A DNA stretch of 64,000 bases, taken from positions 1,984,001 through 2,048,000 of the forward strand of contig OZ176056.1 in the NCBI GenBank assembly GCA_964247055.1, read 5' to 3'. The notes beneath the pieces were generated by a model, which did no database searches, was not told the DNA's origin, and saw only the letters and a program-made list of their open reading frames with translations. The DNA comes from Paragordius varius (taxonomy: Eukaryota; Animalia; Nematomorpha). Position numbers and translations under genes: made by a program. Of this stretch, positions 21,070 to 47,900 are shown in pieces (the stretch's first letter is position 1; every line of letters starts with the position of its first letter).

Positions 21070-24000
21070 AATTAAGTTGACAAGCTTCATTAAACTTATA
21101 TTTGAAAAATTTTGCGTCAATAATCCATGTCATAAAAAACTTCAAAAATATATTAACTAATTTAAATTCCAAATCTAAAAGACTTTAAATAATCTTTATA
21201 ACTCTTTGAGTTGTTGAGAAATTAGATTTTCCGAGTTTTTAGATAATCTGAGATTACTCAGATATATGACATACAAACAAAACATATACCTGTAATTGAC
21301 AAGCCGGTAAATTAATGTCGCAAATCATTTCTGTACATGGGTGTTCAACTTGAAGTCTGGGATTTAGTTCCAAAAAGCAAAAAGTGCCCTTCGCCGTATC
21401 ATACAAGTATTCAACAGTTCCTGCACTAACGTAGCCAACCATACGGGCTAATCTTACAGCGGCCTACATACATATAAAAAGAGTTTTTTTCTATTCACAT
21501 CTCATTAAATTTGTCAATTAAATTGTGGACAAATTTTGTTTTATCTTATATGCTACAGCAACAATTATGTGAATTGGACAACACAAATGTTACTCTATAT
21601 ATACATGGTTGGTTCAAATATTTGGGTATAATAAAAGAGTATTTAAGGTTTTTTTAATTTTCCTAAAATAAATGTAGCTACTGAGTCTAAAACAGCTTAA
21701 AATCCAAATTGTTGGATAATAAAGTTTGCATTATTCTGATAAAAACGAACGATTCTGTAAATTTGGCTGTGAAGATAAACACATACATTGATAAGGCAAG
21801 TTTTTAATGTTATAAGCTATATCAACTTAAATCTTGATAATTATAAAAAGCACCAAAAAGTATTACCTTTTCGCTAGCTCACAAGAAACTTACACTTTTT
21901 GGTGTTTTTAAAAATAATATCATATTGACCAAATATTAGAACATATCTATCATTTAATTTTCAAATTTTAACAAAATTCAATTACCTAGTACCTTTTAAT
22001 AGTCCCCAAAACCAAAAAACTCTAAAACTTTAAAATCAAACCTTTTCCATTTCTTCAATGACGTGGGCGGTTGCTATGGTAACGGGTGCTTCCTCAATAA
22101 TCTTTTGATGACGTCTTTGAATGGAACAATCTCGACCAAAGAGAGAAATAGCTGTTCCATAACTATCAGCCAGTAGTTGAACTTCCAAATGCCGACAATG
22201 GCTAGCCAGGGCCATCAAGAAAATGGGGGATCCTGGGACTTCAGTTTGAACCTTTTAGTACATAGCATTATAAAATTTTGTTTAGTAAGGATTAAAAAAA
22301 TTAAAAAACTGATAAAACAGGCTACCATATTTTGCCATAATTTTTTTAAAAAACTTATCATTTTGTGTTATATAACAAGCGATAGAAACGTAAAGTGATA
22401 TCACATTTAATCATACAAAATCACAATTATTTAGATTATGTAGTAGGAAATATCAAAATGTTTAAAAATTATTAGTCATTATATTTTTAGCCATATTTCA
22501 GATAATAAATTCCTGAAAAGATCTGTAAAAATTATTAGCCATTCACTTTTTTTAACCTTTTTTGGAGATACGACTTTTGTAAAACCTATTTATATTTACA
22601 ATTTAAATTTTAAAAAGTATTTTTTGCCGAAAATAAAACCCAAAAATTGATACCTGTTTAAAAGCTATTGGAAAATCTTCAGGTTTTAATACTTTACGTA
22701 TTCCTTTCCCTCCACCACCTTCGGAAGCTTTTATCATAATAGGGTATCCAATTTTTTTGCTCATCTGAAAAAAATTTTTTTTGTTCAAAATATAAAAAAT
22801 TAAATATAAATTCCATAATTTGATTTAAACTTTTACTATTTTTTTTATGATTATTATATAATATATGTAATTTTGAGTTGCGAAGTAAAAGATAATTGGT
22901 AATTATATAATTTAAAATTTCTCTCAATTATGCAGGTTATAAAGCTAAAATCAAAATATGAATATAGTTTTATACATGAAAAAATATTATTTTTCATTTG
23001 TTTATAAACATCATAACTCAAATATCAACTATATATATTATTTGACTAAATTTTGACAAAACCTTCAAAAAATTATTATTTTATAAAATTATGAAATTTA
23101 ATTAAAACACCCTTAAAACACAAAAAAACTCGAAAAAAAATCTATATAAACTTGTAATCCTTGTTCACAGTTTGAGATACAAGCCGATTCATATATTTCA
23201 GTTGGGATCAAGTTATTTAAATTATCTAAATCATAATAAGTTGCGGCGTTTTGCGATGCTGAAGTAGAAACACTATTTCCTACATTGGTTATTTGTTTGG
23301 TTGTTGAAACACTAATACTTTTAGTCATGAGGGATTGATTAGCAAAATGTTCGGCATTTATACTTTGTTGTAGGGAGCGACTTTTGACCTCTAAATTTTC
23401 AATCTCTATGCCTGCATTTAAGTTTCGATAATAAAATTAGTTCAATAAAAAAACGGACAAAATGTACAAAAAAATAAAATTCTTTTTAAAAGGTCCGTTA
23501 TATTGTTACTTTCCACATAAACTGAATTAAAATTTAAAATTATGTAATTGAGTTAAATAACAATAAACTTTGCGACCTGCGACCCAAAACAATAAATTAT
23601 ATTTAAAAATCATGGTTCAAAAAATATTGTCTTTTAAAATAAGATTTGATGCTTTTTAATTTTAACATTTTGTCTATATAATTTCAATTTTTATTGTAAA
23701 TTAATTAAAAAACGAAATTTCTTATAGGTTTTGGTTAGTGCTAAATGTTGCATAAATATTTTAGTAAATATTAATTATTTTTTAAAAAATGTTTTTGAGA
23801 ATCCCGCTATTAAAAATGAAGAGTGTTAATATATAAATAATTATTAAAGTTTGCAACATTAAAATTATAAAAGATCACCATAATTATATTTCAATATTTA
23901 TTATAATTCAACCATATATTGTACATTGTTCTATGCTTTAAAATTTTTACAAGCAAAATATTTTAAATATATTTAATGCAAAGCGAATTTTGAAAAAAAT

Positions 24001-25941
24001 TTACCTTTTATTTTTATCGGTTTAAATGAAAACTTACCCATAAAACAAAAAAAATATTCGTTTGAAAACACCCCCGTAAAAATTTAAAACTCATTCCCTT
24101 ATATAAATTTCTTAGCCTAAATATCCACTTTTAGTAATTTAAATGCTATTCATATAGACTATGAAAAACCAATAAGCCCAAATAATTAATTTTCAGACCA
24201 AGGTTTAACCATGGGGACAAATTATATTTTTTAATGCAAAAATATTAAAAGAACTTTAATACCCGTTAAAACAGTCTTGCTACCTTCAAACCTTAATATT
24301 ATCTACAACAGTGTTACAAACATTGTTTATTCATTTATTTCAAAATATTAATCTCTTAAAATCTTTAAAATACTAAAAACCTCGCAAAACTCAAAGTAAA
24401 AAGCATGCATTGCAAATACTAATGGGTAAAAATCACTCTCTTATATATGATTAATATCTTAGCCAAAATATTTATAGTTTATCACAAAAACTCAAAAAGC
24501 CCTTTTAAAAATTAAAGAAAACCCACCAAATAGCCATGAAACCTTTAATGACCTATAAAATCACCTCAAAAAACACTGACACCCTCTAAAAACTCCGCAA
24601 ACCCCCTTAAAAATATAAACTAAATCCAATCCAAGGCAGAGTAGAACAAGGGTGGTTGTCAAAACCGTAAAAGGCATTTTATCACCAAGGGCCATAGCAA
24701 ATTCCGAAGGTTAAAAATTATATCCTTATATAAAATCTCCTAGGCGATATAACTAGAATTTAAATAACTACTACAACAATAAAAAATCTTAAATAAACTT
24801 CTCAAAATCCTATAAAAACTTGTTATAAAACAACAAAAATAATAAAAAATTCCTTAAAATCCTAACAAAAACCACAAAACCTCAACCTCAAATCTTAAAA
24901 GATTAACCTGATCCACTCCAAGCCAGGGTGGGAACATGAGCGCTTTGTGCAATCAGAGTAGAAGCTATTTTATCGCCCAGGGCATGCATAGCAAATGCCG
25001 ATGGGCCCAAGAAAGCTAGGCAGCGGTCCGCTAAAGCGAAGGGCAGAGCTGGATTCTCACTGGCATGACCCCAACCGGCCCAAACTGCATCCGCCCCCGT
25101 CCGCACACAAATCTCTACAATGAGTTCAACATTGGCGTAATTGTGATTGTTGGAACCGCCTGGAACCGGGACATATTGATCCGCCATTTTTATGTACTCT
25201 ATTAATTTTAAAGGAAATGAATATATATGGATGAAAGGAAATATATATTTTAATATTTAAAAACTTAGGATATATATACTCTATAATCATATATATATAT
25301 AATTATATAATAGGATAACCTTCCCCATAAAAACCCCGGAAGTGGGAAAAATAGATAATTTATTTACGCATCAATCATGCTTTTTTAAAGAATATATTAA
25401 AGTTAAATTGTGGAATTTACAATTTAATCTTTTGTTATGATATAAAAAAATTATTAATTTATATAAAATTTAAAATAATATAAATTAAATGGTGAATCAG
25501 ATGGTTTTATAATATCCACAAACCATTTCGCTAAGGTTTATTATAAAAATCGAAAAAGTTCAAGATCAGATAATTTTTTAGAAAATCTATTATATAAGAG
25601 GTGAAATTACAATTGCTTTTGCTTATAATTATTGATGTATATTTTACCAGCATTAGCTTTTAAATCTTCGGGAGTCACCATGACAACAAATTTTATCGCT
25701 CGTTCGTTTCGAAACATTTCGTATGCCCATCTTCGAATAGATCGCATACATTTAACCGCAGCTATACCATTGTTGGCAATAAGGATCTAAATTTAAACGT
25801 TATAAAAATTACCTTTTGAATTAGAGTGGTTCCTCCAAATTTTATAACAAATTCTTCGGGATTGGATAGCGTAAGCGAGCCATGTTTTGAAGTACTTATA
25901 TTATTAATCGATGTATCCAAAACACTTATATCGGATGACAT
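13341..25941 (-). CDS. ACC: Acetyl-CoA carboxylase, N-terminal 782 codons (biotin carboxylase plus following region); biotinyl and carboxyltransferase domains absent from the window
   Basis: 14 phase-consistent GT-AG exons: 25941-25813, 25786-25648, 25198-24908, 23390-23152, 22764-22654, 22251-22042, 21463-21290, 20580-20490, 20118-19796, 19383-19250, 18208-18058, 14913-14728, 13757-13687, 13438-13341 (2347 nt). Motifs [86 protein letters not shown]. An in-frame stop lies upstream of the ATG at 25941. Confidence 0.95.
14183..14372. mobile_element. Empty copy of the MITE family that hosts Penelope
   Basis: tacagtatgcattttaatggttgctta...gtaacacagg / ctgtgtcgcaaat...taagcaaccattaatatgc. Confidence 0.65.
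15788..18036 (+). mobile_element. 5'-truncated, 5'-inverted RTE-clade LINE in an ACC intron, frameshifted
   Basis: Forward part ~16,060-18,036, inverted part 15,788-~16,058. TSD gtgtgacataaaat at 15,774-15,787 and 18,037-18,050. RT motifs in ORFs 16321-17211, 17225-17569 and 17695-18015, with frameshifts near 17,200 and 17,565. Confidence 0.92.
16321..18015 (+). pseudogene. RTE reverse transcriptase (disrupted) with an internal PHD-type C4HC3 finger
   Basis: [47 protein letters not shown]. Finger CAIC...CNKC...HKKC...CNNC at 17,264-17,395. Confidence 0.9.
21033..21066. repeat. (TA)n microsatellite
   Basis: Perfect TA run; similar runs at ~13,095-13,122 and ~19,080-19,102. Confidence 0.9.
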
Positions 25942-27023: not shown

Positions 27024-27247
27024 CAGGGGTGTCTAAAGCAAATATTTCGCGAGCCGCATTTAAAATATATATGGCCATTTATAAATAAAATATTAAATTT
27101 CAAACGTAAAAAATTTTTTCTAGTTTTTACAAATCGGGTAGATTTATATGTAGAAATATTGTTTTAAAATTAATTTTAATAATGTGAGCAAATGTTTCCA
27201 ATTATGATTTTCCGAATATTTCGCGAGCCGCCTGTTGGATAACCCTA
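27024..27247. mobile_element. hAT-type MITE
   Basis: TIR caggggtgtctaa / ttggataacccta; near-TSD ttttaaat / gcttaaat (8 bp). Confidence 0.6.
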
Positions 27248-27539
27248 GCTTAAATCAATTATTTTCATGCATGTTATGTGCCGTTTCGAAAAGAATTTAT
27301 AACCATCTATTTTTTTATAAGACCAATGCAGTTTCTGTTTTTAATTGTATTTTACAGGTTCTAATATTAACTAAAAGTTACTTCTAAACGATTAGTCTGC
27401 TTTATTTTTCCCTTCAATTTTCGAAATATAAACAATCAAATTTATTTATTGGATAAACAAATTAGTGAATTTACTACACTATTACATCTATAATATTTTT
27501 ATGGAAAATCTTTCAAAAATATTATATATGACAAATAAA

Positions 27540-30500
27540 TTATTCAGGTGCCGGCTTTAGATTTTTAATGGCTTCTTCCAAAACTTCTAAAATTATAAAT
27601 TAAATACAGTTATGATTAAATTTATAATTATAATGTTTAACACTGTAAGTTATAGTTTAAAATATATTTGTTATCTATATATACCTTTTGATATATCAGG
27701 ATCCTCTAATAATGCATCTAGAATTAACATAAAAAATAGTTTATTTGGCCAAAGTGAAATTTATATTAACTATCGAATGTAGTGAATAACAAATTAGTTA
27801 ATGAACTGAGTATATAATTAATTTTTTTTTCTTAGGAGATATATTGTATATAAAATTACTCAATTTATACATGGGTTATAAATTTTCTATTACTGATTAT
27901 ATTTAGTGATTATGACATTATGTATTACAGGATTATCAATTTGCTTAAATCAATCGAAATAATAAAATTAGTAAAAATATCTTTTTTAAAAAAATAAAAT
28001 TATATTTTAAATTTTATAAAATATTTTACTTTCAAATCCTGCATCTGGAAACATGGCGCCTAGATCAATGAGAGAAATAATTAAAGTTATGTCATATAAC
28101 CAGATATTTAAATATTTTATAATTAACAATATTTTAAAAGAAAAAATTATATAATATATTATAATTTTGTCAATTTTTATCTTAAATTTTTTTTACATTT
28201 TATTAAATAATAATATAATAAAATTAATTACTTTCATTTGCTTTGTCGATTAAATCTAATTAAGGTAATAAAATTATGAAAAAGTGATTTGCTTATATTT
28301 TTTAACATAAGGGTTGATTGTCGAATGAGAAATTTAATTTTTTTAGGTTATCCGAATGTTTAAAAATATTTTTATTAAAACTACCTATTTTTTGGTTATA
28401 ATATTAAATTTCATGGATGTTCATTCAAATTAAAACTATGTATATCCGTATCGTATTATAATTAACTTTAAAATATAATTAATAAACTATAAGTGGAGAT
28501 TTATTTTAAAGTAACACAATATTAAATTGACACTTTTTTGGAAATTTTGCGTTTGTTAATGTGATAAGATTAATGTCACCTTGAATAGTGTCCATCATAT
28601 CTATATATACTGTTTAAAGCCAAAAATATTTTTTTGTATTTAAATACATTAACAAAAAATATACTGCTAATGCGCTCTTTCAAAGCTAAATTTGATATAC
28701 ATAATTTATTTAATGTGTTTTTTCAATTTTTAGAGTTATAAAGCATACATTTTATGGATACTTTCATGCCGTCTATAAAATAATTTATATAAATATTAAA
28801 CAAAACACAAAAACGTAATCCTAAAAATCTTTCTCAAATATAAAAGAGTACTTGAAAAATACAAGACTGTCATTTTTTTAAAAATATTCAACAATATTAA
28901 TCCTATATGTGCGGTTGTAAAATCAGCGTGTCTCTGAAACCTAAATGGCTTAAATAAATATATTTTAAAAACCGGCAGTTTTAATAATTATTCGAATTTA
29001 TTGTTATTACTAATTTAGGTGATTTTAAACAAATGTCGTCAATTAATACACAATAATTTTTTTAAACATTATATAAATTTCATAACTTATCACAAAATTT
29101 ATCACAATGTGGGCTCTTATAGTAATCTTTACATACAATTTTTTTTTCATTAAACCAATTTTATTTTAATTGTTTAAAAAAAATACCAATTTTGGCCCGA
29201 TCTATATAAAATTTAATGATTTAATTAAAATTTTATAAATTATATTGCCATTAAAATTACTTATATTTTCTGGACCTAATCAAGAAGTAAAATATTTTAA
29301 AATATAATTTTTATAATGAAAACTATATAATAAAAATATATTACTGATATTTCGCGTTTCCTCCAAAAATTTTTTTGATTCTAATTATATATATGGATAA
29401 TTTTAATTAAAGATCTTTAAAAAATAAAAATAATTGCTACAAAATAAAACATAAAAATGTTAAGATTAGATCCTAAATTGTATTGAAGAGTATATTGAAA
29501 TACAAAGCTATTTTGATTTAAAAATGAAAGGTAAGTAAAAAATAAATATATATGTCAATAAATTAAAAATTTGATGGTATTTAAAACTTTATTAGAGTCT
29601 TCAGGAGTTCTTGGGAAAAATACATAAACATCATTTAATCAAAAAAACTTTTATAAGTTATTACGTATTAAATCACATGATTCTATAAAACATTTTTTAC
29701 CAAACGCAACATTTTCTATCCAAACGAAATAAAAAAAGTTTCTTTTAGTTGAAAAAATGTTGCGATGAATGAATGTTGCATTTGATTGAAAATGGTATAA
29801 TTATAATTAAACGGGCTTTTTGAAAATTCAAATTAAATTTTAAAAAAATCAAAATATATCAACTGCCATAAAGTAATTTTAAAAACCTTATTGGAATCTT
29901 TATAAATTATTATAAGTCATACAATTAGATATAAAACATGAGATTTAAGCTTTTTCGATTTTTAAAATTTTGATATTTTTTGTTATTACAAATATGGTAA
30001 AATTTTTAAACCTTCTACATTTTAGATAAAAGAGTTGAAACACAATCTATTTTTCTTGATTCACTATTATTCTTTTAGGGTATTGGCCGCTAAAAAGAAT
30101 TTAAGGGAATTTGAAGAACAATCGCAGTGGTTTTTCTTAAAAATTTTGACGAGCCGTAGAGCTTTTAGGGCTGCGGTTTAAATTAAATTATTAGCTTTAT
30201 ACAAAAACCCAAGTCTCTTAAAAGCGTACAACCAGTATAAATTCACAAACGCCAATTAAAAAGAGTGGAAAATTATGAAGACTAGTGACCTGATTTTTAA
30301 AATTAGCCAGCAATATAATGTCCACCAAGGCAACTCAAGTTTTTAGTAAGACTATGTTTTTAAACAAACTTCTTGAATATTTTTTATTTTTACAAATATT
30401 TTGGATCATTATAATTCATTAAAGCTAATGAATAAATTATACATTAACTTTCATCATTCTTCCAATAAATTTTAATTTATAACAGCTGAATTTTGGTTTA

Positions 30501-33500
30501 TATTTTATAAAACGTATTTTTTGAAAAGTCAGTAACCATCTAAGAGAACGGTTCCAATGTTAAAAACCGGTATTAAAAGTTATACTGTAAGCCAGGTCTT
30601 CCAAATTTTAAGAGATATGCTGTTTATTTTAAATTTTTACAACCCGATTGTGATTATAAACGAGCATAAACCATTGAAATTTTGGTTCCACTTTTTTTTG
30701 ACTTGGTTTTCCGGGCGTTAGTTTTCATGTTTTGTCCTTATAATTTTAATTTTTATCAATATAGATTCTAAGTAAGACATATACCTTCCATAAGATTGGA
30801 TCCTTCTGCAGAGGTAAAATAAATATATTCAATACATCAGTAAATTACTAAGTACCTGTATTCAAATTTTCGACATCTGAAATATATGGTTTATATCATT
30901 AAAATCATAACGATATATGTGCAAAAATGATTTTCAAAAATTGCTCAATTATCTTTAAAAGATGTGTTTTATAAAAATATTTAATATATAAGAAATTTAG
31001 AATTGAAAAACATACGCTCCAATATTTGTCGGCCTATAAAATTAAAATGAAATAAAATTCTTTTTTTTTGAAAAAAATTAAATAATATAATTTTTTCGAA
31101 TTGTACCTTGAACGATTCTGTCATGACTAGTTTTAAATCTTTTGCCTTATGTAAAATATTATAAAAAGTATACTTGGTCGAAGTTCTAATTGATATAGAA
31201 ACGAATTATAAATTGTTAATTTAACCCTAATCGTATTTAGGTCAAATTTATCCAATCTATAATAAATTTTGATAGCGGTATTTTATGTGTTTATTTAAAG
31301 TAATAAAAAGTTTTTTGGTTACCCTTTTTTCAGAAAAAATATTTTTTTTTAACTTAATGCTAAATTAAATGAAATTTACAATCACAAATGACTTTATAAA
31401 ATTAATTAATTCACTTATGTTCTTTAAGTGCTGATTACCCAATTTTATTTTTTGAAATTAATAAATTAAAGATTTAATATGTTATAAAAAATGAAGTCTA
31501 GATTACTTATAAATATGAAATAATCCCTCTATTTAAACAATTTTTTTATTATTTCAAAAAATATCGGCTTTTGAAATATAAATATTTCTTTTTTGCATTA
31601 AAATGTAAGTTATACCGCTTATATCATCCTCACCTACATCATAGTCTAAATTTAGGGAAATATATATATATATGTATACTCCATCAGAACTGGAATCAAC
31701 AAAAAATATGTGGAGTCTTAAGAACTAACTTAATTTCGGCCTTAAAATTTGAATATTGTCAACTGACCTTAAGTTTATGCATTAATCTTTACAAGGATAA
31801 TATAAATTAGCCAAATTTATAAAATAATATAATATTTCGTGATTATTCTTAAACTTTTATGTAAATTATGGTTTTTTATTGTCATACATCTTTTTAAAGA
31901 TGTCTATTTTGATTGCATATTAATTAAAAGGTTAAAAAAATTTTCATCAGTTTTTTTGGAGACCTATTTTTATAATTTGGTTTCATGTTGTGTGATATGG
32001 AATCATACATTTCATAATTGATATAATATTTAGCCGACCTAGGGTTAAACTGCTTATATGTTAAAAAACTTTGGTAGCAAAAAAATATATGTGCTAAAAA
32101 AGTTTGGTTTTTAAAATTATTTAAAAAAATTACAAAACATTAATAAAGGTAATATTAATTAAATTAATACTGCAATTTTATCTAAAAATTGTACATCCAC
32201 CATATCATATCATATTTTTAAAAATTTATGAAAGGCACGGCTAAGGTCATATAAACTAATAATTTTTTTTATAAAAATCTACTTCTTTGAAGACCGGATG
32301 GTCCAGGTTGGGGTTCTGTGGCCTCTGTTTAAAATATAATTGGAAAAAATAATATGTATATCATAAAAATATTTAGCTAGTATTTTAATTAAAACCTGAT
32401 GTGCTTTGTGGGGTAATTTTAGATATGGTATTATCAGAACCTGTAGAAAATATATTTTTTAAATAAAAGTATATAAATCACAGCTAATTTTTCAACAACA
32501 ATAGTATTTTCTAATTTTCTTATTTATATTACCATAAAATAATGTATAAATAGATAGAGCCGAATTAAAAAAAACCTTCAGTTGATGCTGGATTTACACT
32601 GGGCCCTGATAAAAATTAAATATTTGCTTTTAGTTATAAAGTATGTTTTTTTAATTTTTGAACATAAACCGCCAAAGATACTTAGGTTAGGGTATAATAC
32701 AGTCAAAAAAGTAAAAATTGTTTCTAAAAATAACAGTATTTGAACAAATTTTAAAATTTGTTAATTACTTTGTCACCAAAAATTAACACTAACTTGTCAT
32801 TACCTGGTTCTAACTGAGCCAATTCGCCTCCATCATCTAGATTTTTAGATTTATAAATTTTTTTTTAATCAATTTATAAAAATTCCCATAATTTGTTTGG
32901 AATAGTTTAGCGAAGCAAATATTTCAATTAAATAATTTTATACAATTTCCAATGTGTTTACCTGTTGTAATATTGAAAAAACCCGAAATTACAAAACAAA
33001 AAGTTATTTTTATATAAAAATATTTAATTATTTTTTATAAAAATATTTGTGTAACATAAATTGTCATCATCAATATTGGAATTAAAATTGCTTTTTTTGG
33101 TAGATTATAATTATTTAGATAAATCACTAATACTTATCCCATAATTTATCAATTAAACTTTTTATTTTTTTAAAAAAATATAATTACCAATATTCGCAAT
33201 TGTTTCAACCAATTTAGCAGCTTCACTGATTTCAACTATTTTATAATAAAATAAAATTTAGAAAAAAACCAAATAAAACAAAATATTTGATAATATATGG
33301 TTAATTTTTATCATAACATATAATTTTTAGGGTCATTGAATTATATACCTCCATCTACAACATTTTTATTTGTAAAAATATATTTGAGTTTTACCTGTGA
33401 GTACAGTAGCTAATGTTTAAAAATATGTATTTTATAATATATTTTTATATAATTTATAATATTAAAAACTATCTTTGAAGTGACCGTTTTTTTAACAAAG

Positions 33501-35702
33501 CAATTAGTAAAAAATTATTTAATTAAAATAACAATACAAAGTTGCAAATTTATACAAAAATTAAATCACAAGGCTATAGCTTATGTTTTTATGGTTATAT
33601 TAGGTGAATTACTTATCCAAACTCTATTCGTAATTAAAGAAAATTTATGATAATATATGTTATATTATTGCAATTTTTAAAGAAGTCTTTTGTCTTTGTA
33701 AATAAAGAAAAATGACAATATGCAAAAATTAATTTTTAGAAAAATCAGAGTCCTTATACATTCAAGACCCGCCTTAATTGGCCCTCCCAGCAAACTATAG
33801 CAACGCGCAAATAAATAAGCTCATGTTTCGATGTATATAGAGTCTTGCTTCAAATAATAGTTTTGACTTGTTAGGTCTTTGGGGACCTCATAAAGAGCAA
33901 AAAGCAATAAAATCAATTAAAATGTAATCATTTTTAGGCTTTTAAAAATAAAATATGGAAATTTATTTAAAAACGTGTCATAGAATAAATAAAATTTGCG
34001 AACGGTTTCGTAGACTATAACGTACGTCCGTCCTCAGCGTTAAAAAATGGCCAAAATATATTGTTGATATTTTGCTGATATTTTGCAAATAAATCTGAAA
34101 TTTTCTTTTTCCGTATCAAATTTCTCGGTATGGTAATGTTTCGGTTTAGTGTTAAATGTACAGTAAAAATTGAAATTATACGGACAAATTCTTATAATAT
34201 AAAGACAGATATTTTCTTTCTAAAAGATAACCATACTTTTTAAATTTTAATTTATTTAAATACAGTAAAATTGAAATTATACGGACAAAATCTAAAAATA
34301 TAAAGACAATAGACAGTCACACTTTATAAAACTGAGATTTCAAAATTTTAATTGTTAAAAAATTGTAAAATAGGATATATAAATATATTGATAACACAAT
34401 CAATTACATATTTTATATTTTGTATGTAAATAATTTATATGGAAAAATTTAGATTTAAAAAAGTATGGTTGTCTTTTAGTAAAAATATTTGTCTTTAAAT
34501 TTTTACATTTTGTCCGTATAATTTCACTTTTTACTGTATAATTCCTTGTTTTAAACTGTAAAGTATGAAATAGAGATATATATTGAGAACATGATTAATT
34601 ATGTATTTTATTGCGATATTTATAGGATAAATTTATGGGTTAAAAAATATGGTCATCTTTTAAAATAAAAATATTGTCAATTTTACTGTATTGTATATTT
34701 ATAAGTTTAAATGACGCAACCTTAAATGCGATTCAAAAAAAATAAGTAATGACTGGACTAAAACAATATTTACATATTTTTACTTTATAAAATAAAAGAT
34801 TCTAGGCAATAATTTTGAATTAAAAGAGTATGAGTTAAAAAGGTCAAATCAGTTAACCACTTTGTAACAAAACTTGTTCTTTATGCAAGACTATGCTTTG
34901 TGATACTATAAGGACAAAACGTACAAAAAAGGATTTCTTACAAAGCCAAACATTGATTTGCCCTAATTTTCCCCATTTTAATTTTATGTTTTTATTTAGT
35001 TTTTTAAGAATTTAAATCTCGATTTATCATTTTGGAAACCACAAAAGGCTGAGTTAATTTTATAAAAAGTCAACATTTTAAGAAAAAGTTGTCTTTTCTA
35101 GAAAGCCCTACTTTGAGTTTTTTCGTTTTGTTTTGTATGATTAAGTTAATTTATTTATTTTATCATGATTAAATTTTAAATTCACAAATTCCATTTTACG
35201 TCGAATAAACCCGAACTTTTATCCGGTAATATTAAAATATTTGCAATATAAATTAAATCGTTTACCTGCCACTTAAAATATTAAATAATATAACTTAATA
35301 AAAAATATTTTTAGTGTGATATTATTAAATTGGTAAATTTTAATCATAAGAATTACACGTTCATTTTAACCATTATTAATAACTAGTTTGAAATATTGAT
35401 GTAATAAAATTTTTGTCCAAGATATAACATAAAAACAAATTTAAAGTAATTTTAAAAAAATTAAATTAATTTTACAATAAAATAACTCACCAAAAAAATG
35501 TAAATAATTTATCAAATATTGGATAAAATATAATTTATTTTAATTATTTCTATATTTTTTTTATTAATTCCAACGGTTAAAATTATTAATTTTTTTTTAT
35601 ATAAAGCAATTATGAAGAAATACCTTGTGGACCTAGAGCACCTAGAAGTTTATAATGCAAATATATTTATAAGACATTTACCAATTCCGATCGCTGCAAC
35701 AA
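27540..35702 (-). CDS. Micro-exon gene, unknown product (~240 aa recovered; start codon not located)
   Basis: 26 AG/GT-bounded exons, all of length 3n and all open in phase 1, plus terminal exon 27586-27540 (EVLEEAIKNLKPAPE*). Coordinates are in the first finding. Confidence 0.72.
34159..34538. mobile_element. TA-CAGT MITE family copy with a duplicated left end
   Basis: tacagtaaaaattgaaattatacggacaaa at 34,159, again with a 1-nt deletion at 34,261; the inverse tttgtccgtataatttcactttttactgta ends at 34,538. Confidence 0.65.
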
Positions 35703-36531
35703 CTAATTTAAATCAATGATAAAATAAAATTAGAATAAATTTTTAGGACAAAACTCTTCGAATTCACACAAAATTTTTAAATAACTGGCGTAATTATTCT
35801 TTTATAAGCTTAAATAATGATGTTATCCTTAAAATCATGTTTTATCCAGGGGGTTATCTTGCACCGCAATCCTTTAAAACATTTTTGTAAATTATTATCA
35901 ATTAAATATGAAATATAATAAATGGTGCCCATAAAATCTTTAAATGTTGATATTTATTTTATTAAAATTTTCTGGATAAATTGTGCCAAATGGTGAATAA
36001 TTAGTATATATATATATGAACGCGATTACAGTCGTGTATCCTTTATTTTATCAAAAATTTATTTTTTTTCGTTAAATGGTTATAAATATTTGGTAAAGAA
36101 TGGAAAAACAAGAGCTCTATGGTAATTCTTATACTTTTTTGATGAATATATATTGTTAATACCATAGAGCTCTTGTTTTTTCCATTCTTCTTTTTTATGA
36201 TCGGCTGCAGGCGCGGAGAAGAACTTGGTATGTTCACTCCTGAGATGCGCGTACCTTTTGATTTTATAGGAAATCTTGTTCACATTCGGTGATAAACGGA
36301 ATTTATCTCATTATCTTCATCAATTTATTGTCACTTTTATTATCCGGAAGAAATTCTATCACTCAGCATTATAATCTCACATGAATTATTTCTACAGAAC
36401 ATACAACTCCAAAATTTTCATCGACAATTTCATTCCCTAAAAACCATTCTTACACATCAGTGGACATATCATACTGATTCTTTCTATTTATTACTATATC
36501 TCAATACACCACCACTAAACTAAATTCCTAC

Positions 36532-37350
36532 ATGGAAAGCCATAATTCTAAAAAAAGCTCCCGTAATTTAGAAATAAATATGGCCATCTGGAAAACACGT
36601 GGCACTTCAGATAACAAATTGGATATAATAATTCGCGAAATGAAACGTTTAAACATCCATGTGTTAGAGCTGTCGGAGACTCATATGCAACATAACTCAC
36701 ACAAAATATACGACAATTACTCGTTTTATAACTCTGGCGGGGAACTCAAACGAAATGGATGCGGTTTCTTAATATCGAATAATCTTGCCAAACATACTGA
36801 TATATATAGACCTATCTCCGATCGTATTATATCCCTACGAATCAACACCAGACCCCAGGCTAAAACAATATATCAAATCTATGCCCCCACGAGTGTTTCA
36901 CCCGAAGACGAATGTGAAAAGTTCTATAATGAGTTACAAATGGCTCTTTGTGAAACATCCAAGAAAGACATAACTTTCATCATCGGCGATTTTAACGCTA
37001 TCATAGCTAACGATAAAACAGACAAGGTCACTGGTAGAAAAGGCCTTGGTAAAGTGAAAAACCCCCGTGGTGAAAGGCTAATTGATTGCCAACAAAACAA
37101 TCTCTTTATAGCGAACTCGTTTTTCAAACAACCTAACAGACGGCTCTACACCTGGACCTCACCGTGTCGTAAACACAGGAATCAAATAGATTACATATTG
37201 GGAATGCAAAAATACAAAAGCTCATTTCAAAACATCCGGTGCTACTCAAGTGCAGACTGCAACTCAGATCATAACCTATTTATGGCCAAGATCAAAATAA
37301 AGCTACAACTTCCCCAGCCGCAAAAAAAAACTTTTCCAAAACTAAATTGA
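36532..37350 (+). pseudogene. APE-like endonuclease domain of the LINE
   Basis: LSETH, QIYAPT, IIGDFNA, NQIDYIL and SDHNL motifs; frameshift at ~37,350. Confidence 0.9.
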
Positions 37351-38057
37351 ACTACAAACTTATACCTGCCGATTTTACTCCAATCCTTAACAATAAATTT
37401 GAATCCCTAAAATACGAAACATTGAACACAGATGATCTTTGGTCTACTATTCAGAAAATTACCATCGAAACAGCTAAAGAATATATACCGCCTGCCACAA
37501 CAAAAAACAAAAAAACCATATCACAACAAAGCATCGACCTAATTGAACAGAGAAGAGTAGCAAAATCCAAGGGCACTCCCCTTGAGTACAAAAATATTAA
37601 TAATGAACTACAAAAAAGCATAAGATTTGACAAAGAATCTCATTATAATACAATCTGCGCTAACCTAGAGCAAGCTGCTAAATATCACAACTATTTCTCT
37701 TATATTAAAGACATTCAACCGCGCAAAAAACAAATATACAAAGGTCCTATGTCTCATTCAAACGGAAAACTTCTAACCGATAAAAAAGGAATAATTAAAC
37801 TCTGGGAAGAATACATCCAAAATTTATTCTCAAAACAATTAAATATAATTGCCATGAACTCTGAACAAACTTATGACCCTCCTATACTAAAAGAAAAAAT
37901 TGAATGGGCCCTGAAGCATTCATCAACCGGCAAAGCATAAGGATTCAATGATATCTCTACCGAGTTACAAAGGCACATTCCCATAAAATTAATTCTTTCG
38001 TCATTTCAAAAAATCTTCAATGAGGCAACATTCCCGACGGACTGGAACAAATCACTA

Positions 38058-39353
38058 GTGGTCCCTATATTCAAAAAGGGCGATCCTAAACTATGTGAAA
38101 ACTACCGTACAATAGCATTGATCAATCAAACCTCAAAAGTTTTCTTAAAAATAATACAAAACCGTCTACAAACATATGTCAAACCGGAAATATCAATGAC
38201 ACAGGCAGGCTTTAGAGAAAAAAGAGGATGCCGAGACATGATCTCAAACCGTAGATGGATAATGGAAAAAAACTGTGAATTCCAAAATGAGCTACACTTA
38301 TATTTCGTGGATTTTTCTAAAGCCTTTGATACCGTTCAACATGACATTCTCTGGAAGGCCCTTAAACAAATAGGAGTTTCCGATCACTTAATCAAACTAA
38401 TTAAATCCATATACTCCAACTCCTACCTATCACTTAACACCCCGCATGGCCCGACCTCTTGGAGTCCAATGAACATAGGTCTGCGTCAAGGCTGCATTTT
38501 ATCCCTCATGTTGTTCAACATATGGAATGTATCTGAGGGATCTAAATCTGCCAGGAATAAAAGTGGGGGTCATAATCTGACGACTCTCCACTACGCAGAC
38601 GACACGGTTATCTTAGCAAATTCACAAACAAACCTCGAAAACAGTCTCCGAACTTTTATAAATGTGTGCAAAAAATACAATCTTACATTGAACCTCAACA
38701 AAACTAAAATTTTACATATCAACTCCCCTCATTCCTATGACTCGCTTCGGATTAATGGCGAAACAATTCAAGTAGTCAACGAATACACATACCTTGGAAG
38801 CATTCTCAACAACTTAAGCTCCAGTTCCCAAGAAATAAGAAGACGCATAGCTATCGCCAAATGCGCTCTATCCTCACACTACAAGTTATGGAAATCTCAT
38901 GACATAACCCTTAAAACAAAAATTCGACTAGTAAATGCATTAATCTTTCCTATCATGTTATACGGATGTGAAAGCTGGACTATCAAAAGTGAAGACGAAA
39001 AAAGAATAAACGCGTTTGAAATGTTTTGCTGGAGAAAAATACTTGGTATAACATGGAAGGACAAAATAAAGAATATCGACATTGTAAATACAATTAACGA
39101 ACAAACAACGCTTCAGGGTAAAATAATAAAACAAAAATTCGGTTACTTTGGACACATTATTCGGGGCAATTCTTTGGAAAAGGATATTATGTTAGGAAAA
39201 GTAAATGGTAAGAGAGGAAGAGGACGCAGACGTATTCGCTGGGTAGACGAAATATTATCACTTTCCAAATTGTCATTGCAAAAACTATCTCAAAAAGCTC
39301 ACGACAGAACCGAATGGAGGAATTTTTCCTACAAAATCGCTAATGGTCGATAA
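38058..39353 (+). pseudogene. Reverse transcriptase domain of the LINE
   Basis: FVDFSKAFDTV, GLRQGCILS, LHYADDTVI, YLGS, YGCESWT and RGRGRRRIRW. Separated from the upstream part by an in-frame TAA at 37,938-37,940 and a frameshift. Confidence 0.92.
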
Positions 39354-40644
39354 CCGACTACAAGCTCAACAACAACAACAACATACCCATTTAACGAAAA
39401 AAAAATTTTAATAAAATAAAGGATACATGACTGTAAGTCGAAAATGCGTTCCATGAAGCCATTTGTATTAATTACCCCTGTTTTTTTTACCAATTCTTAT
39501 ATTAAATTGTGAGTCAATCAAAATGTAATGTTTTTATTTTTATTGATAAAATCCTTAAAATTTTAGTGTAAATGTTGACAATGAATGCCATTAGGTCTAA
39601 TTATTTGTCCAAACTGTTTCATTTAAGATGTATAAAATAAATGAAATATGAATAAAAATAGTATACCAGGAGAAGCAGCTAAAAATTTTTTTCCATAAAT
39701 GACAGAATCCTTTTTATATTAAATATATTTTCATACTTGTGTCCGACCTTTGTGAATTGGGCTTGATTTGTTGAGCCTTTCATATATCTTTTAAGAATTA
39801 TAATATTACTATAAAGTTTTATTTAATGTCAATTTCATATCACAGAATTTATTTTAAACGTGTAGATATTTTCAAACTTTTATACACTAAAATTCTAAGC
39901 ACGGAAAAATATCAGTTAAAATCTTATGAATATAAAAAGTAGCAAATTTTTTTTTATAATAATATGATGCAATATCAGTAAAAAATTAATTTATCAATGA
40001 ATTTTCGTAGATTTCTCTAACTTCTTCGGACCAACACAAAAATAAAGCCTGATTATTAATGCATTTTTAAATATAAATACCGTTTTATTAGGGTATTTCT
40101 TTATATTCGCAGCTATATTGAAAATGAATAAAATTCACAATTATTATTTAAAAACTTAACATTAAAATCTTTAACCATTTTAACAACATATGAATTCGAC
40201 TTTGTATTCCGAATCGGTAAAGGCAAAGTTTATTTTTTTATCTCAATTATTATAGTTAACAAGTTCTTACAAATAAGTAGACTCTCTTCAATCCAAACTA
40301 TGAGCTTTAAAATACTGCCCAATATCTGCATTTTCCAATTATATAAACAAATTTATAAAGATCGTTGGGAAACATTGTACAAAAATAATTTAAACTTTTA
40401 TTGTAACCGAAATAAATCTTCTAAACTAAAAAATAAGGTAATTAAATCTTTTACATAAAAATAAGATATGTACAATTGAGCATAGGCAATTAATATACAT
40501 TATGCATTTTAATGGTTGCTTATTTTATAGTAGGGCAATTTGCAACACAGGAGTGTATGTATGGAAAAAAGAAAGGAATAAATTGTTTATTTTATATTAA
40601 AATAATAATTTGTATTCTCGTAAAATTTATTGAATTCAAACTAT

Positions 40645-40793: not shown

Positions 40794-42113
40794 TTATTGT
40801 TTTTTCCTTGGTGTGGTAAATATTTTGAAATAGTCTGTTTCTTTTAGGAAGTCTTTTGTGACTTTGTTAAGATCTTTTCTCTCTTCTCTTCTGTTGATGA
40901 GGTGTGTAATGTTTGAATGGATAAAACAAGCCTCCAAAATCAACCTATCGGACAATTTGTCGGCTTGTGCTACAATGGATGCTGGGCCGAAGGTGTGACC
41001 TGTATTGTTGCAATGGTCGTAGATGGCCGAACCTTTTCTGTTGTGTTCTTTTTCTCTAATATTTATAGGGCGTTTAGATTGTCCAATATAGTGTGCTGGA
41101 CAATCATTACATCTTTTGTGGTAGACTGTACATTCGTTTTTTGGTTCTCGGCGTGGTCTTAACAAACTTAATAAATTCTTTGGTGGTTTGTAATAAACAC
41201 GTACATCCTTTTTTGTAATAATATTGTTAACTTTTTTGGATGTATTGTTATAAGTCAGGCAAATACATTTTTCGGGCGGATTTTGTTTTTCTCTTGGGTT
41301 TAATATATTGTTTATTGAATCTGTTATCCAATGCTTTTTATAACCTTGATCAAGTAATATGGTTACGATTTCTGATGTTTGAGATGTTCGTACCTTTATG
41401 TCATTTGGTAATTTAAGCGTTCTTTTTAGAAATGCGTTTGTTATGGCTTTGTAAGTTGCTACTGGATGGTTAGACGTAATGGGTAAAAATTGGTAAGAGA
41501 AAAGTTCTTTATAATGGACTTGTATGGATATACTATTGATTCTACGGGTAAGATTGAGGTCTAAAAAGTTGATACTGTTGTTCTTTTCTTCCTCTATTGT
41601 TAGTTTTAACTCGGATATTTTGTTGATAATGTTTTGAAAAACTTTTATATTGTCAATGGTGTCGATGATTAAAATATCATCCACATAACGGGTATAGAAG
41701 TTTGGACGAAATTTTTCAAAAGCCTGTTGCTCAATTAGTCTCATGCAAACTTCACCAATGATTGAACTAAATGGTGAACCCATTGGAGTCCCGCGAATTT
41801 GCTTATAGAAACTATCATTAAACATAAAATAAGTATTATGCAGCGCAATATTTATTAGGGATTGAAGCGCACTTCGATGGATCTGGCTGTTAAAATAATC
41901 TATGTTATCATTAATTGTTTTGTTTAACGCCTGAAACGCTAACTCAATTGGTATATTTGTATATAAAGAGACTACATCTAATGAACAAAATATATCCTTA
42001 TCTGTAACATGATAATCATTTAAAACCTTAACTAATTCATAAGAGTTTTTGGCTGTATAATTATAATTTTCAAGTATGGGTTTAAAGAGATTGGATAGGT
42101 ATTTACTTATTTT
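40794..42113 (-). pseudogene. Inverted duplicate of the 3' half of the Penelope ORF
   Basis: The 343-aa ORF 40794-41825 is identical to the C-terminal part of 42648-44660. Confidence 0.93.
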
Positions 42114-42647: not shown

Positions 42648-44660
42648 TTGATTGAGAAAAAAACTGATTTGATTTGCAAAAAACTCGAAAACAAGATAAG
42701 ATCTCGACATGAAAAAAAGTTAAAAAAACTTTTTAAAAGCAACAATATTAGTATAAACGAAAAAAACAACTATGGATCTTTTATTAATTTATCATCCCAC
42801 ACATTTACACCAGATGAACTTGACATATTGAACAAAGGCACAAAGTATGCACCACAACCAAGATCATCAAACGCAAAAGAAATATTGGTAAAAACAGAAC
42901 ATATTCTTGACAACTCCGACGAAAAAACAAGAAAACAGATATATAAAGCCATCAAAAAGGATCATCATAAGAAACCGTTAATAAACGAGTTACAAACAAT
43001 AAAAAAATTAAAAACAAACGAAAATGTTTTGTTTACAAAATCCGACAAGGGAAATTTTTTAGTAGCATTAGACAAAAAAGATTATACAGAAAAAGTATGT
43101 ATTATGTTAAATGACCAAGACACGTATATAAAACTAAAACAAAACCCAATGTGCAAGTCTGTTAACCAAATAAAAAAATTACTAAAACTCTTAAAATCTA
43201 GACAACATATTAATGAAAAAATTTACATGAATATGTTACCACAGTCTCAACATCCACCTACATTTTATGCAAACCCTAAAATCCATAAACCCAACAATCC
43301 GCTACGTCCTATCATTGATTATCGCACTGCGCCTGCTTATAAAATAAGTAAATACCTATCCAATCTCTTTAAACCCATACTTGAAAATTATAATTATACA
43401 GCCAAAAACTCTTATGAATTAGTTAAGGTTTTAAATGATTATCATGTTACAGATAAGGATATATTTTGTTCGTTAGATGTAGTCTCTTTATATACAAATA
43501 TACCAATTGAGTTAGCGTTTCAGGCGTTAAACAAAACAATTAATGATAACATAGATTATTTTAACAGCCAGATCCATCGAAGTGCGCTTCAATCCCTAAT
43601 AAATATTGCGCTGCATAATACTTATTTTATGTTTAATGATAGTTTCTATAAGCAAATTCGCGGGACTCCAATGGGTTCACCATTTAGTTCAATCATTGGT
43701 GAAGTTTGCATGAGACTAATTGAGCAACAGGCTTTTGAAAAATTTCGTCCAAACTTCTATACCCGTTATGTGGATGATATTTTAATCATCGACACCATTG
43801 ACAATATAAAAGTTTTTCAAAACATTATCAACAAAATATCCGAGTTAAAACTAACAATAGAGGAAGAAAAGAACAACAGTATCAACTTTTTAGACCTCAA
43901 TCTTACCCGTAGAATCAATAGTATATCCATACAAGTCCATTATAAAGAACTTTTCTCTTACCAATTTTTACCCATTACGTCTAACCATCCAGTAGCAACT
44001 TACAAAGCCATAACAAACGCATTTCTAAAAAGAACGCTTAAATTACCAAATGACATAAAGGTACGAACATCTCAAACATCAGAAATCGTAACCATATTAC
44101 TTGATCAAGGTTATAAAAAGCATTGGATAACAGATTCAATAAACAATATATTAAACCCAAGAGAAAAACAAAATCCGCCCGAAAAATGTATTTGCCTGAC
44201 TTATAACAATACATCCAAAAAAGTTAACAATATTATTACAAAAAAGGATGTACGTGTTTATTACAAACCACCAAAGAATTTATTAAGTTTGTTAAGACCA
44301 CGCCGAGAACCAAAAAACGAATGTACAGTCTACCACAAAAGATGTAATGATTGTCCAGCACACTATATTGGACAATCTAAACGCCCTATAAATATTAGAG
44401 AAAAAGAACACAACAGAAAAGGTTCGGCCATCTACGACCATTGCAACAATACAGGTCACACCTTCGGCCCAGCATCCATTGTAGCACAAGCCGACAAATT
44501 GTCCGATAGGTTGATTTTGGAGGCTTGTTTTATCCATTCAAACATTACACACCTCATCAACAGAAGAGAAGAGAGAAAAGATCTTAACAAAGTCACAAAA
44601 GACTTCCTAAAAGAAACAGACTATTTCAAAATATTTACCACACCAAGGAAAAAACAATAA
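42648..44660 (+). CDS. Penelope RT + GIY-YIG endonuclease (670 aa ORF; N-terminus extends to ATG 42,362 across a frameshift)
   Basis: PLRPII, SLDVVSLYTNIP, GTPMGSPFS, RYVDDIL, NFLDL; endonuclease VYHKRCNDCPAHYIGQSKR...REKEH...RLILEA. Confidence 0.93.
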   Translation: MIEKKTDLICKKLENKIRSRHEKKLKKLFKSNNISINEKNNYGSFINLSSHTFTPDELDILNKGTKYAPQPRSSNAKEILVKTEHILDNSDEKTRKQIYKAIKKDHHKKPLINELQTIKKLKTNENVLFTKSDKGNFLVALDKKDYTEKVCIMLNDQDTYIKLKQNPMCKSVNQIKKLLKLLKSRQHINEKIYMNMLPQSQHPPTFYANPKIHKPNNPLRPIIDYRTAPAYKISKYLSNLFKPILENYNYTAKNSYELVKVLNDYHVTDKDIFCSLDVVSLYTNIPIELAFQALNKTINDNIDYFNSQIHRSALQSLINIALHNTYFMFNDSFYKQIRGTPMGSPFSSIIGEVCMRLIEQQAFEKFRPNFYTRYVDDILIIDTIDNIKVFQNIINKISELKLTIEEEKNNSINFLDLNLTRRINSISIQVHYKELFSYQFLPITSNHPVATYKAITNAFLKRTLKLPNDIKVRTSQTSEIVTILLDQGYKKHWITDSINNILNPREKQNPPEKCICLTYNNTSKKVNNIITKKDVRVYYKPPKNLLSLLRPRREPKNECTVYHKRCNDCPAHYIGQSKRPINIREKEHNRKGSAIYDHCNNTGHTFGPASIVAQADKLSDRLILEACFIHSNITHLINRREERKDLNKVTKDFLKETDYFKIFTTPRKKQ

Positions 44661-44926
44661 CACATGCACACCACTTTGCATTTTTTATGTTATCATAATT
44701 TATAATTTTATTTTTCAAATTTGTTTTAATTAATCTTATGTTTATTTTATACTTTGTTGTTTTTTCCATACACTAACTACTGTGTTGCAAATCGTCTATA
44801 GTGTGAAATAATCAGCCATCAAAATGCATACTGTAATAAAAATTTATATGTATTCTTAATTATATATTATTTTTTAAAAACATGTTCAAATACTTAAAAT
44901 TTAGACACGCTTTTACTTGTTCCCGG

Positions 44927-47900
44927 CTATGCCTAAAAAAGTATGAATAATTTTTTTGTAAAACCTAAATTTATATTGTTACAGTAAATATCGTTATAAG
45001 ACGAAATCTGAAAACATAAAGACAATTTTTTTTCAAAAGCAATCATACTTTTTGTCTTAATTTTTCCTAAATAAACTATTATTTACATTCGTAGAATATA
45101 TAAATGTGTTACTAATATACATCTCTATTTCATAACAATGAGTTATAAACAGTAAAAGGAAATTATACGGACAAAACGAAAAATATAAAACATTTTTTTT
45201 CTAAAAGGCAACCATTTTAATCGAGATTTAAATCAATATAACTCATTATTTTAAATGGCAAAGTGTGAAATAAAAATATATAATATCAACACAATCAATT
45301 TTATATTTTACAAATGTAACTAATTAGCTTATATGAGAAACATTGAGATTTTAAAAAGTATGGTTGTCTTTTAGAAAAAAATATTTGTATTTATATTTTT
45401 ACGTTTTGTCCGTATAATATCAATTTTTACTGTAATTGGAATAAAGTCTTAAAAACTATAGTCGTGTTGAAAAATATTGGTATTTATATTTTTACGTTTA
45501 GTCTGTATTTAATTTTTACTATAAATATTATTATACACAACATAAAAAGTTTTATAATAACAAGACCTGTTCATAATAATATTTATCCATCAACTGAGTT
45601 TCATTTGAATCTGAAAAAATAAAACAGATGACAAAATTATTTCCGTGAGTTTAATCCCGGTTACAATTTCATGCTTGTTATTATAAACATGACCAGTCAA
45701 TACTTAAACAACCATATCTTATGGCTATAAATACAAATATGAATTTGACATATGATAAACTTAATTTTATGACCAAATAAGTATATATAATCATATATAT
45801 GGTCATAGAAAAATTGAATTTTCACTCTCTGTGCCATTTAACTACTTATATTATTAAAGCGGAAATTGCATTTATAAGCAATAAGATCGTTATTTTTTAA
45901 TCGGTCAAACCAAATTCCTTATATATGGTGTAAATTAAACAATGAATCACTACAATACGTAGTTTTATATCATATTATTATAAAACCAGGGGTATCCAAC
46001 ACAAATGGCTTCGCAGGTTTTTGACTCAAAAAAATAGGCGGGCTCCGAATATATATATAGTATAAATATTTGATCTTTTAATAAATATTACAATATACAT
46101 CAATTTCTAGTTTATTGCCTATCGAATAAAATAATTCAAAATTTTTTTTGAGAAATATTAATTTAATATAGGCATATTTTTTGAAAATATTTTTCCAAAT
46201 TTTCCCGTGTCTCACGAATTATCACGGAAGTGTTGGACACCCCTACTTTAAACCAAATGAAAATATTGCATATGCCATTTACAATTTAACTTCACTCCTG
46301 AACACTTAAATCACCCTAAAAATAAATTAGGTGTTTTCGGGCTAATATAACTCCTTATTAATATGAAATTTATCTTATTAGCTTAGTTTATTACTTTTCA
46401 ATATTATTATAATTTTAAACAAAATTTTATTCTTTCAAAATTTAAATAAATATAAGGTTTAAATCTTAAAATACACTTAATTTTTTTAAGGGTGAATTTG
46501 AATGTTCGAGGGCTAATTTGATTTTTTAAGGGGAATTTGAATTGTAAATGGTATATAAAAGGATTGTATATTTGATTACAAACATATTACTTATTGCAAA
46601 TTCAGTAACAGACACGTTGGGTATTTTAGTGAGATTCTGCAAATTCAAAAATTTGAATTAGATAAATAATGATTGCTTAATATATATAATTATGCTAACA
46701 AAAAAGGGATTATATTTGATTATAACTTGTATATTTTCTGAAATTCCTAATAATAAATACGCATGAAAATATAAATTATAATATCGATTGAAACAGCATT
46801 GTATTTGTAATCGAAACCGCCGTAATTAACTGTTTAAAACTTTTCCTTTTTATAAATCTCTTATAATGTATGATTTAGAATCATACGATGTCCGGTTATA
46901 CATTCTTTCCATAAAAATGGTTATTTTTAATATATGGAATCAATTTACAATGACTTTAAAAACCAGCTCTATCAAAGACACTAAAACTAAAACCGAATTT
47001 AAAATGAAACCATAAAAATTTTTTTTTTCAACAAATATGTGGAAAAGGCAAAACAAAAAATTTTGGAACCAATTTTTATTATTCTAATATCAACCGTTAT
47101 GCATATTTAGAGTTTTTTTCGAAAAGTATATATATACTTTGTTCAATTTCAGTTCTGGATTGATTAGTATTAGGTGAATAATTATCATTCTTGATCTCAA
47201 TAACTAATTTACGATAAAATGTTAACTATATGTAAAAAATATAAATTGACAGCTAATATATTTTTTTGATAAAAAATTTATTCATATTAGTTAATCATAA
47301 ATATTAATATTTTGAAGTAATTTAACAAATTATAATCAGGTAAAAACATAAAGATATGTAAGTGTATATCCTTACCAAATACAATCTGTTTACGATATGC
47401 TATATAATTATATTAAAAAAATTATTAAACTTTGTATAGCACGGATCAATATATAAAAGCCGGTTTATTGGCTTTATAATACAATTATTCGCAAACCTTC
47501 ATCAATCTTTAAAAATATACCATTGCTCTTCAAATTTATTCTTGAAAACTTTAAAGTCACCCTCAAGCATTTTAAATAACTATAAAATGTTTTTAAATAT
47601 CTTAAATTACATATATTTTAAAATAAAATCTGAATATTATTATTATATCCGGAAAAACAATGCCATTGAGGAATTACGAATCAATTTAATAAGTTATTAT
47701 GTATTTTTAAGACTTTTCGATAAATTAAAACCCTCAAGGTAAAGAGGTGTGAACTAAACTATCAAATCAATGTCAATATTGAAAACTAATAAAACAATTA
47801 TAATTTCAAATTTTTTGCATTTAATATAAAGTATAAATGGCTATTAATCAATGATAAAATGTTTGTTTTTCCATTTACGCAAATAAGTTATTTATAAGCT

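Follow-up and report, generated by a model that had tools for sequence, protein, structure and literature searches.

Analysis of a 64,000-nt stretch of the genome of the nematomorph Paragordius varius (GenBank assembly GCA_964247055.1, contig OZ176056.1, positions 1,984,001 to 2,048,000 of the forward strand; hereafter the window) revealed a chain of very small exons on the minus strand, the known part of which starts at window position 35702 and ends with a stop codon at 27540. The chain lies in a unique island of 40 kb that is flanked on both sides by arrays of a single satellite, and an acetyl-CoA carboxylase (ACC) gene with its own ATG at 25941 starts 1.6 kb downstream on the same strand. 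All 26 internal segments were rebuilt from the window at the coordinates listed in Table 1, each preceded by AG and followed by GT; the exon list of an earlier description made from the letters of the window (the sequence-only reading) was reproduced in its coordinates, strand, AG/GT bounds, lengths in multiples of three, phase 1 and final TAA.

The internal exons are 6-48 nt long (median 22.5), every one of the 26 being a multiple of three, and all 26 start at codon position 2, corresponding to intron phase 1. Joined together, the exons read as a single open frame of 238 codons closed by TAA in a 47-nt last exon, and no exon of the chain repeats another. The introns measure 28-1448 nt (median 137) and have a GC fraction of 0.20, against 0.39 in the exons. 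The exon model includes a 28-nt intron (31146-31173, minus strand) between the 12-nt and the 39-nt exons and two more introns of 40 nt, and very short and kilobase-sized introns are therefore present within one gene.

Regarding the question of chance or gene, AG..GT segments that are free of stops and have a length in multiples of three are frequent in this DNA: in the same 8.4 kb, the plus strand has 90 of them and the minus strand 145, or 22 and 59, respectively, when donors were restricted to GTA. As such segments arise frequently by chance, the combination of AG/GT bounds and lengths in multiples of three proves little by itself, which justified the caveat attached to the original list, that length had been selected for and that single exons might be false. 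Since that selection rule is insufficient, the tests were built on features outside it. Splice sites were compared with those of 308 chance candidates picked by the same rule elsewhere. In the chain, acceptor position -3 is a pyrimidine in 25/27 cases, donor position +3 is A in 22/26 and exons end in G in 17/26, while the corresponding rates among the chance candidates were 0.51, 0.33 and 0.20 (P = 5e-6, 9e-8 and 9e-7, respectively). A search for k-mers enriched near the exons yielded only a greater AT/T-richness of intron ends.

A codon-position model was trained on 346 ACC codons of the window and replaced two earlier scoring schemes, namely GC-only exon scoring, which was too weak, and splice position weight matrices trained on the exons themselves, which were circular. 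The joined sequence fits the ACC model, codon position 1 being rich in G and poor in T and position 3 rich in A and T. The frame of the chain is picked by the model in 22 of the 27 exons, and its log-odds add up to 144 bits, those of the two other frames to 51 each; matched chance candidates favour that frame about one third of the time, and the probability of at least 22 of 27 is about 1e-5.

The same codon model, together with generic splice terms, was used in an unbiased chain search by dynamic programming over both strands and three phases each. The search scored 118.6 for the minus strand in phase 1, 43.5 and 37.5 for the other minus-strand frames, and at most 5.6 for the plus strand; control means were 6.4 for Markov simulations, 11.3 for 10-nt block shuffles and 43.5 (maximum 65.4) for 30-nt block shuffles. 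Of the 26 internal exons, 20 were recovered by the search; the three unlisted ones that it added correspond roughly to the false-positive rate of the plus strand, and there was no signal of further micro-exons upstream of the known part. As a whole, the chain is far beyond chance and very probably a real coding gene.

Contigs from sequencing runs labelled as three other organisms, which contain 23-53% of the 31-mers of the locus, allowed a comparison over a 693-nt stretch free of AT-only runs and including four exons (micro-exons 8-11; 150 coding nt). Seven sites vary in these 150 coding nt, five of them at codon position 3, and the changes comprise six synonymous and three nonsynonymous ones (ratio of nonsynonymous to synonymous polymorphism, pN/pS, about 0.16; synonymous excess P = 0.009). 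In one contig the gaps within micro-exon 10 add up to 6 nt and are in frame; in the introns, most of the listed indels have lengths not divisible by three, and the contig matches often end a few tens of bases into introns. Over the four exons the pattern is that to be expected of a sequence translated in the frame of the chain, and because of the synonymous excess the protein looks conserved, which suggests purifying selection on it and not fast diversification. No close relatives were found in the protein database, where the best match of an ACC exon is 70% identical and that of a Penelope open reading frame (ORF) from the window 33%. Two short intronic patches beside exons (32244-32291 and 32628-32675) have a contig depth 5 to 10 times higher in related organism B, which suggests small dispersed repeats inside the introns.

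The predicted product has at least 238 amino acids, is acidic (isoelectric point about 4.6) and contains no cysteine, no tryptophan and four phenylalanines. It starts with ten hydrophobic residues, then Gly-Pro and small residues, a start which, although lacking a methionine, resembles a signal peptide in its core and cleavage region. The following middle part, about 85 residues rich in Pro, Ser, Thr and Glu, is probably disordered; a basic KRFK motif comes next, and the C-terminal half consists of 110 residues with strongly amphipathic helical segments. These computed features agree with the hydrophobic start, P/S/T-rich middle and helical-looking end described for the product beforehand. Runs of phase 1-1 symmetric exons are generally associated with secreted and extracellular proteins. 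Together with the N-terminal stretch, this phase 1-1 layout suggests a putative secreted or surface protein.

Table 1. Features of the micro-exon chain and its flanks, in window positions (LLR, log-likelihood ratio; recovered, found by the chain search).
Feature	Position	Strand	Remarks
Micro-exon 1 of known part, 21 nt	35682..35702	-	LLR 9.5, best frame; recovered; hydrophobic start; no ATG, not the true first exon
Micro-exon 2, 18 nt	35624..35641	-	LLR 9.5; recovered; preceding intron 40 nt
Micro-exon 3, 6 nt, tentative	35266..35271	-	Chain-search score 0.8; length too small against chance
Micro-exon 4, 48 nt, weak	34858..34905	-	LLR 0.6, different frame scores higher; donor GTT weak; not recovered
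Micro-exon 5, 15 nt	33395..33409	-	LLR 5.8; recovered
Micro-exon 6, 6 nt, tentative	33349..33354	-	Chain-search score 1.8
Micro-exon 7, 48 nt	33188..33235	-	LLR 9.7; recovered
Micro-exon 8, 33 nt	32804..32836	-	LLR 12.6; recovered; covered by related organisms' contigs, no exonic change listed
Micro-exon 9, 30 nt	32576..32605	-	LLR 12.0; recovered; variants 32595, 32598 and 32601 all at codon position 3, 4/5 synonymous
Micro-exon 10, 45 nt	32396..32440	-	Supported by codon model; recovered; one Lys>Glu variant; 6 nt of gaps in total (in frame) in one organism B contig
Micro-exon 11, 42 nt, Pro-rich	32283..32324	-	LLR 17.1; recovered; variants: two synonymous, one Pro>Ala
Micro-exon 12, 30 nt	31616..31645	-	LLR 8.6; recovered
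Micro-exon 13, 12 nt	31174..31185	-	Chain-search score 1.4; followed by 28-nt intron
Micro-exon 14, 39 nt	31107..31145	-	Encodes basic KRFK motif; acceptor AAG weak; LLR 3.1, best frame; not recovered
Micro-exon 15, 18 nt	31016..31033	-	Chain-search score 3.4; codon model favours different frame
Micro-exon 16, 21 nt	30856..30876	-	LLR 1.5; chain-search score 0.7
Micro-exon 17, 21 nt	30785..30805	-	LLR 4.0; chain-search score 3.7
Micro-exon 18, 36 nt, weak	29345..29380	-	Very AT-rich; LLR -1.5; not recovered
Micro-exon 19, 15 nt, weak	29261..29275	-	LLR 0.7; chain-search score 0.1
Micro-exon 20, 15 nt	29187..29201	-	LLR 4.9; chain-search score 3.9
Micro-exon 21, 24 nt, weak	28749..28772	-	LLR 0.2; not recovered
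Micro-exon 22, 21 nt	28665..28685	-	Chain-search score 2.1; coincides exactly with GC island bounds
Micro-exon 23, 21 nt	28580..28600	-	Donor GTG weak; LLR 2.5, best frame; not recovered
Micro-exon 24, 24 nt, weak	28232..28255	-	LLR -0.1; not recovered
Micro-exon 25, 30 nt	28030..28059	-	LLR 9.8; chain-search score 9.3
Micro-exon 26, 33 nt	27685..27717	-	LLR 3.5; chain-search score 2.7
Terminal exon, coding part, 47 nt	27540..27586	-	LLR 8.1; TAA at 27542-27540
AATAAA, polyadenylation-signal-like hexamer	27445..27450	-	90 nt past the stop, read directly
Upstream region searched for first exon (ATG)	35703..36540	-	None convincing; palindromic element 36026-36189 inside

The reading preferred here, which we hold to be rather probable, is that the minus strand here carries a genuine coding gene with about 27 known exons, 26 of which are consecutive phase-1 micro-exons, built in the manner of the micro-exon genes (MEGs) of flatworms; it would be separate from ACC because the latter has its own ATG. 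On this reading an upstream exon would supply the methionine, the protein would go into the secretory pathway, and it would be as GC-richer islands, set off by strongly AT-rich intron ends, that the micro-exons are recognised. As all internal exons are frame-neutral, the frame would survive the gain, loss, duplication or skipping of any of them, a property of which flatworm MEGs and aphid bicycle genes make use.

Several observations weigh against this reading. Six internal exons missed by the chain search (micro-exons 4, 14, 18, 21, 23 and 24) are weak singly, and the two 6-nt exons, recovered with trivial scores, are singly indistinguishable from chance and hence tentative; since all exons are frame-neutral, continuity of the frame cannot vouch for any single one of them. 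Among the GC-richer islands of the region, 26 of 51 are not exons, some being repeats, and the rule that a GC island is an exon was rejected on this count. The comparative sample is small, with its 150 coding nt, and some of the contigs may be paralogues. The KRFK motif may be a signal for nuclear localisation and, if so, would speak against secretion. The organism's RNA runs, which are tiny, contain no sampled words of the locus, terminal exon and 3' untranslated region included, and gave neither coverage nor exon joints on the 693-nt stretch with its four exons; these runs are too small for their silence to count as absence of transcription. Finally, the first known exon cannot extend to an ATG, as there is a stop four codons upstream, and no convincing first exon with an ATG was detected within 15 kb upstream (35703-36540, 39354-40640 and 44661-50790). 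First-exon candidates, among them 36472-36454 and 48488-48416, were discarded, none of them standing out. The 15 kb upstream of the known part are full of transposons, and the first intron may hold transposon insertions.

The main rival, possible and distinctly less probable than a MEG-type gene, is a real and constitutively spliced ordinary gene whose acidic helical protein is intracellular and possibly nuclear, the micro-exons being a by-product of the way in which genes evolve in this genome and neither a means of variation nor a sign of secretion. Such a protein fits the purifying selection indicated by a pN/pS of about 0.16, the basic KRFK motif with the long amphipathic helices, and the failure to find an exon for a methionine or signal peptide in the 15 kb upstream. 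Against it stand the hydrophobic core, Gly-Pro and small residues of the N-terminus, arranged as for a signal peptide, and the ordinary exons of the neighbouring conserved ACC, so that the layout is specific to the micro-exon gene; moreover, same-phase runs of 1-1 symmetric exons are typical of secreted proteins, including those of MEGs (PMC10526429) and aphid bicycle genes (PMC9168663).

The other three explanations are unlikely. A micro-exon gene that formerly functioned and has since fallen silent or begun to decay, after insertions cost it its promoter and 5' end, would account for the missing first exon in the 15 kb upstream, for the elements lying directly upstream, which are a miniature inverted-repeat transposable element (MITE, 36026-36189), a long interspersed nuclear element (LINE, 36532-39353) and two Penelope copies (40.6-44.7 kb), and for the lack of RNA signal in the tiny runs. 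Decay is improbable, however: the 238-codon frame runs unbroken through 27 exons whose splice sites are good, most variants seen in related organisms are synonymous, the deletion keeps the frame, and the RNA data are too small to mean absence. Still less credit is given to an artefact in which chance AG..GT windows with lengths in multiples of three have been strung together from AT-rich DNA: although such windows are frequent (90 on the opposite strand of the 8.4 kb), splice sites carry little information beyond AG/GT, several exons have near-zero scores and the original list was itself selected on length, the signal is confined to one strand and phase (118.6 against at most 43.5 and at most 5.6) and far above that of shuffles, the frame preference of 22/27 comes from an independently trained model, the splice consensus positions reach P of about 1e-6, related organisms show a synonymous excess, and a stop codon is followed by a polyadenylation signal, so that a chance chain is already largely refuted. 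A role of the micro-exons as alternative 5' coding sequence for ACC, which begins on the same strand only 1.6 kb downstream, is hardly credible, given an in-frame TAA in the last micro-exon with no usable donor before it and AATAAA after it, and an ACC start at its own ATG (25941) that is followed by conserved N-terminal motifs.

Regarding the surroundings of the MEG-type gene, the satellite arrays on either side of the unique island (13-10382 and 50787-64000) share a 167-168-bp unit with 95-96% matches and have the same orientation. The ACC gene contains a 26-nt GT-AG intron (25787-25812, minus strand), which is considered real because its removal restores a conserved protein motif; the exons of ACC are otherwise ordinary in layout. 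Between the polyadenylation signal of the micro-exon gene and the start of ACC, the minus strand carries two identical copies of a GC-rich 17-nt direct repeat, GCGGCTCGCGAAATATT, at 27041-27057 and 27215-27231, 174 nt apart. Chance would give about 0.01 pairs of this kind, and the repeat may have a regulatory role or derive from a transposon.

Upstream of the micro-exon gene, the palindromic MITE-like element has a 95% identical copy at 49092-49255, 13 kb away, and its hairpin gives weak, sub-threshold matches to microRNA precursors in Rfam; Rfam and ORF scans of the unexplained islands detected nothing beyond this element. The LINE is followed by two Penelope-like copies encoding reverse transcriptase and GIY-YIG domains, placed head to head at 40794-41825 (minus strand) and 42648-44660 (plus strand), the proteins of which are identical over 343 amino acids, with best database relatives about 30% identical. 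A second repeat family with internal inverted repeats is present at 34152-34584, with further copies at 45114-45526, 11704-11989 and 23600-23710, and it sits in the 1448-nt intron of the micro-exon gene as well as in introns of ACC. Within the chain, a 60-nt in-phase exon at 33819-33760, absent from the original list, was proposed by the chain search, and two GC-richer intronic islands (33746-33898 and 30078-30339) have no ORF, no Rfam match and no second copy in the window.

Standard gene finders and read aligners overlook micro-exon genes, which as a class have been described only in parasitic flatworms, the effector genes of aphids being similar in design. A well-supported case in a different and poorly sampled animal lineage would show a repeated origin of this design; with it, a part of the proteome of the animal, possibly comprising secreted proteins relevant to parasitism, would be absent from its annotation. 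It is doubtful, but conceivable, that MEG-type genes arose independently and in large number in an animal lineage that is neither flatworm nor aphid, this locus being one of them, and that their frame-neutral micro-exons are skipped or reshuffled to vary secreted proteins at the host interface. The locus alone is one putative member. Full-text searches gave no paper that links micro-exon genes with Nematomorpha.

Among known systems, single regulated microexons of 3-27 nt in otherwise ordinary genes, such as those of vertebrate neurons, have in common with the present exons that units so small can be recognised and spliced; they are isolated cassettes, whereas the gene described here is built almost wholly of micro-exons. 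Micro-exon genes of flatworms were reportedly described by DeMarco et al. in 2010, and bicycle genes of aphids by Korgaonkar et al. in 2021. A third kind of likeness is to animal genes for extracellular proteins that are built of phase 1-1 exon-shuffling modules, with which the locus shares symmetric exons of the same phase, disordered sequence rich in Pro, Ser and Thr, and the possibility of adding or removing exons in frame, phase symmetry being linked with disorder (PMC3632108). Their modules are usually domain-sized (100-300 nt), while here the median is 22.5 nt and no exon is repeated.

The bicycle genes have about 17 micro-exons on average, and nearly all of their internal exons start at codon position 2 (Stern and Han, 2022; PMC9168663), as do 26/26 in the present chain of many micro-exons. 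They encode paired CYC (Cys-Tyr-Cys) motifs, and in Sternorrhyncha have a signal peptide and salivary-gland expression (PMC9168663). In contrast, CYC motifs are absent here, there being no cysteine in the 238 known residues, no signal-peptide exon was found in the 15 kb upstream, introns of 26-28 nt are present, and the protein database contains no close relatives; the 26-nt intron in ACC and this lack of relatives speak against a well-sampled group of insects.

Regarding flatworm MEGs, an operational definition asks for at least seven exons, at least half of them shorter than 70 nt and divisible by three, with a run of at least four (Olson et al., 2020; PMC7653826). The known part of the present gene has 27 exons, with 20 internal ones recovered independently; 26 of the 27 are short (6-48 nt) and divisible by three, and these form a run of 26, the independently recovered exons alone still giving runs of at least five. 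The interpretation given by the sequence-only reading is supported in part, namely in the micro-exon-gene architecture of 26 symmetric micro-exons, which falls under this definition, and in the coding constraint seen in its frame; the combinatorial splicing that it proposed is conjectural. In flatworms the symmetric exons are skipped to give isoforms, and the product has an N-terminal signal peptide and is secreted (PMC10526429).

Several differences from the MEGs of flatworms are apparent. Paragordius varius belongs to the Nematomorpha and is not a flatworm; the product here has at least 238 amino acids, compared to 189 in the longest of 87 MEG proteins of S. mansoni (PMC10526429); it is acidic and has a sizeable C-terminal half of amphipathic helices, the small comparison over four exons suggests purifying selection, and the Phe/Trp-rich motif of MEGs (PMC10526429) is absent by eye, with no Trp and four Phe. 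Shared with the MEGs of Schistosoma, Echinococcus and Hymenolepis (PMC7653826, PMC10526429) are tiny exons in multiples of three, down to 6 nt, separated by much longer introns, a longer last exon, a locus that is hard for gene finders and read aligners, and a hydrophobic N-terminus followed by a disordered middle, the likeness being one of architecture, read here from DNA. The locus is thus apparently a further case of a known architectural kind, outside flatworms and aphids.

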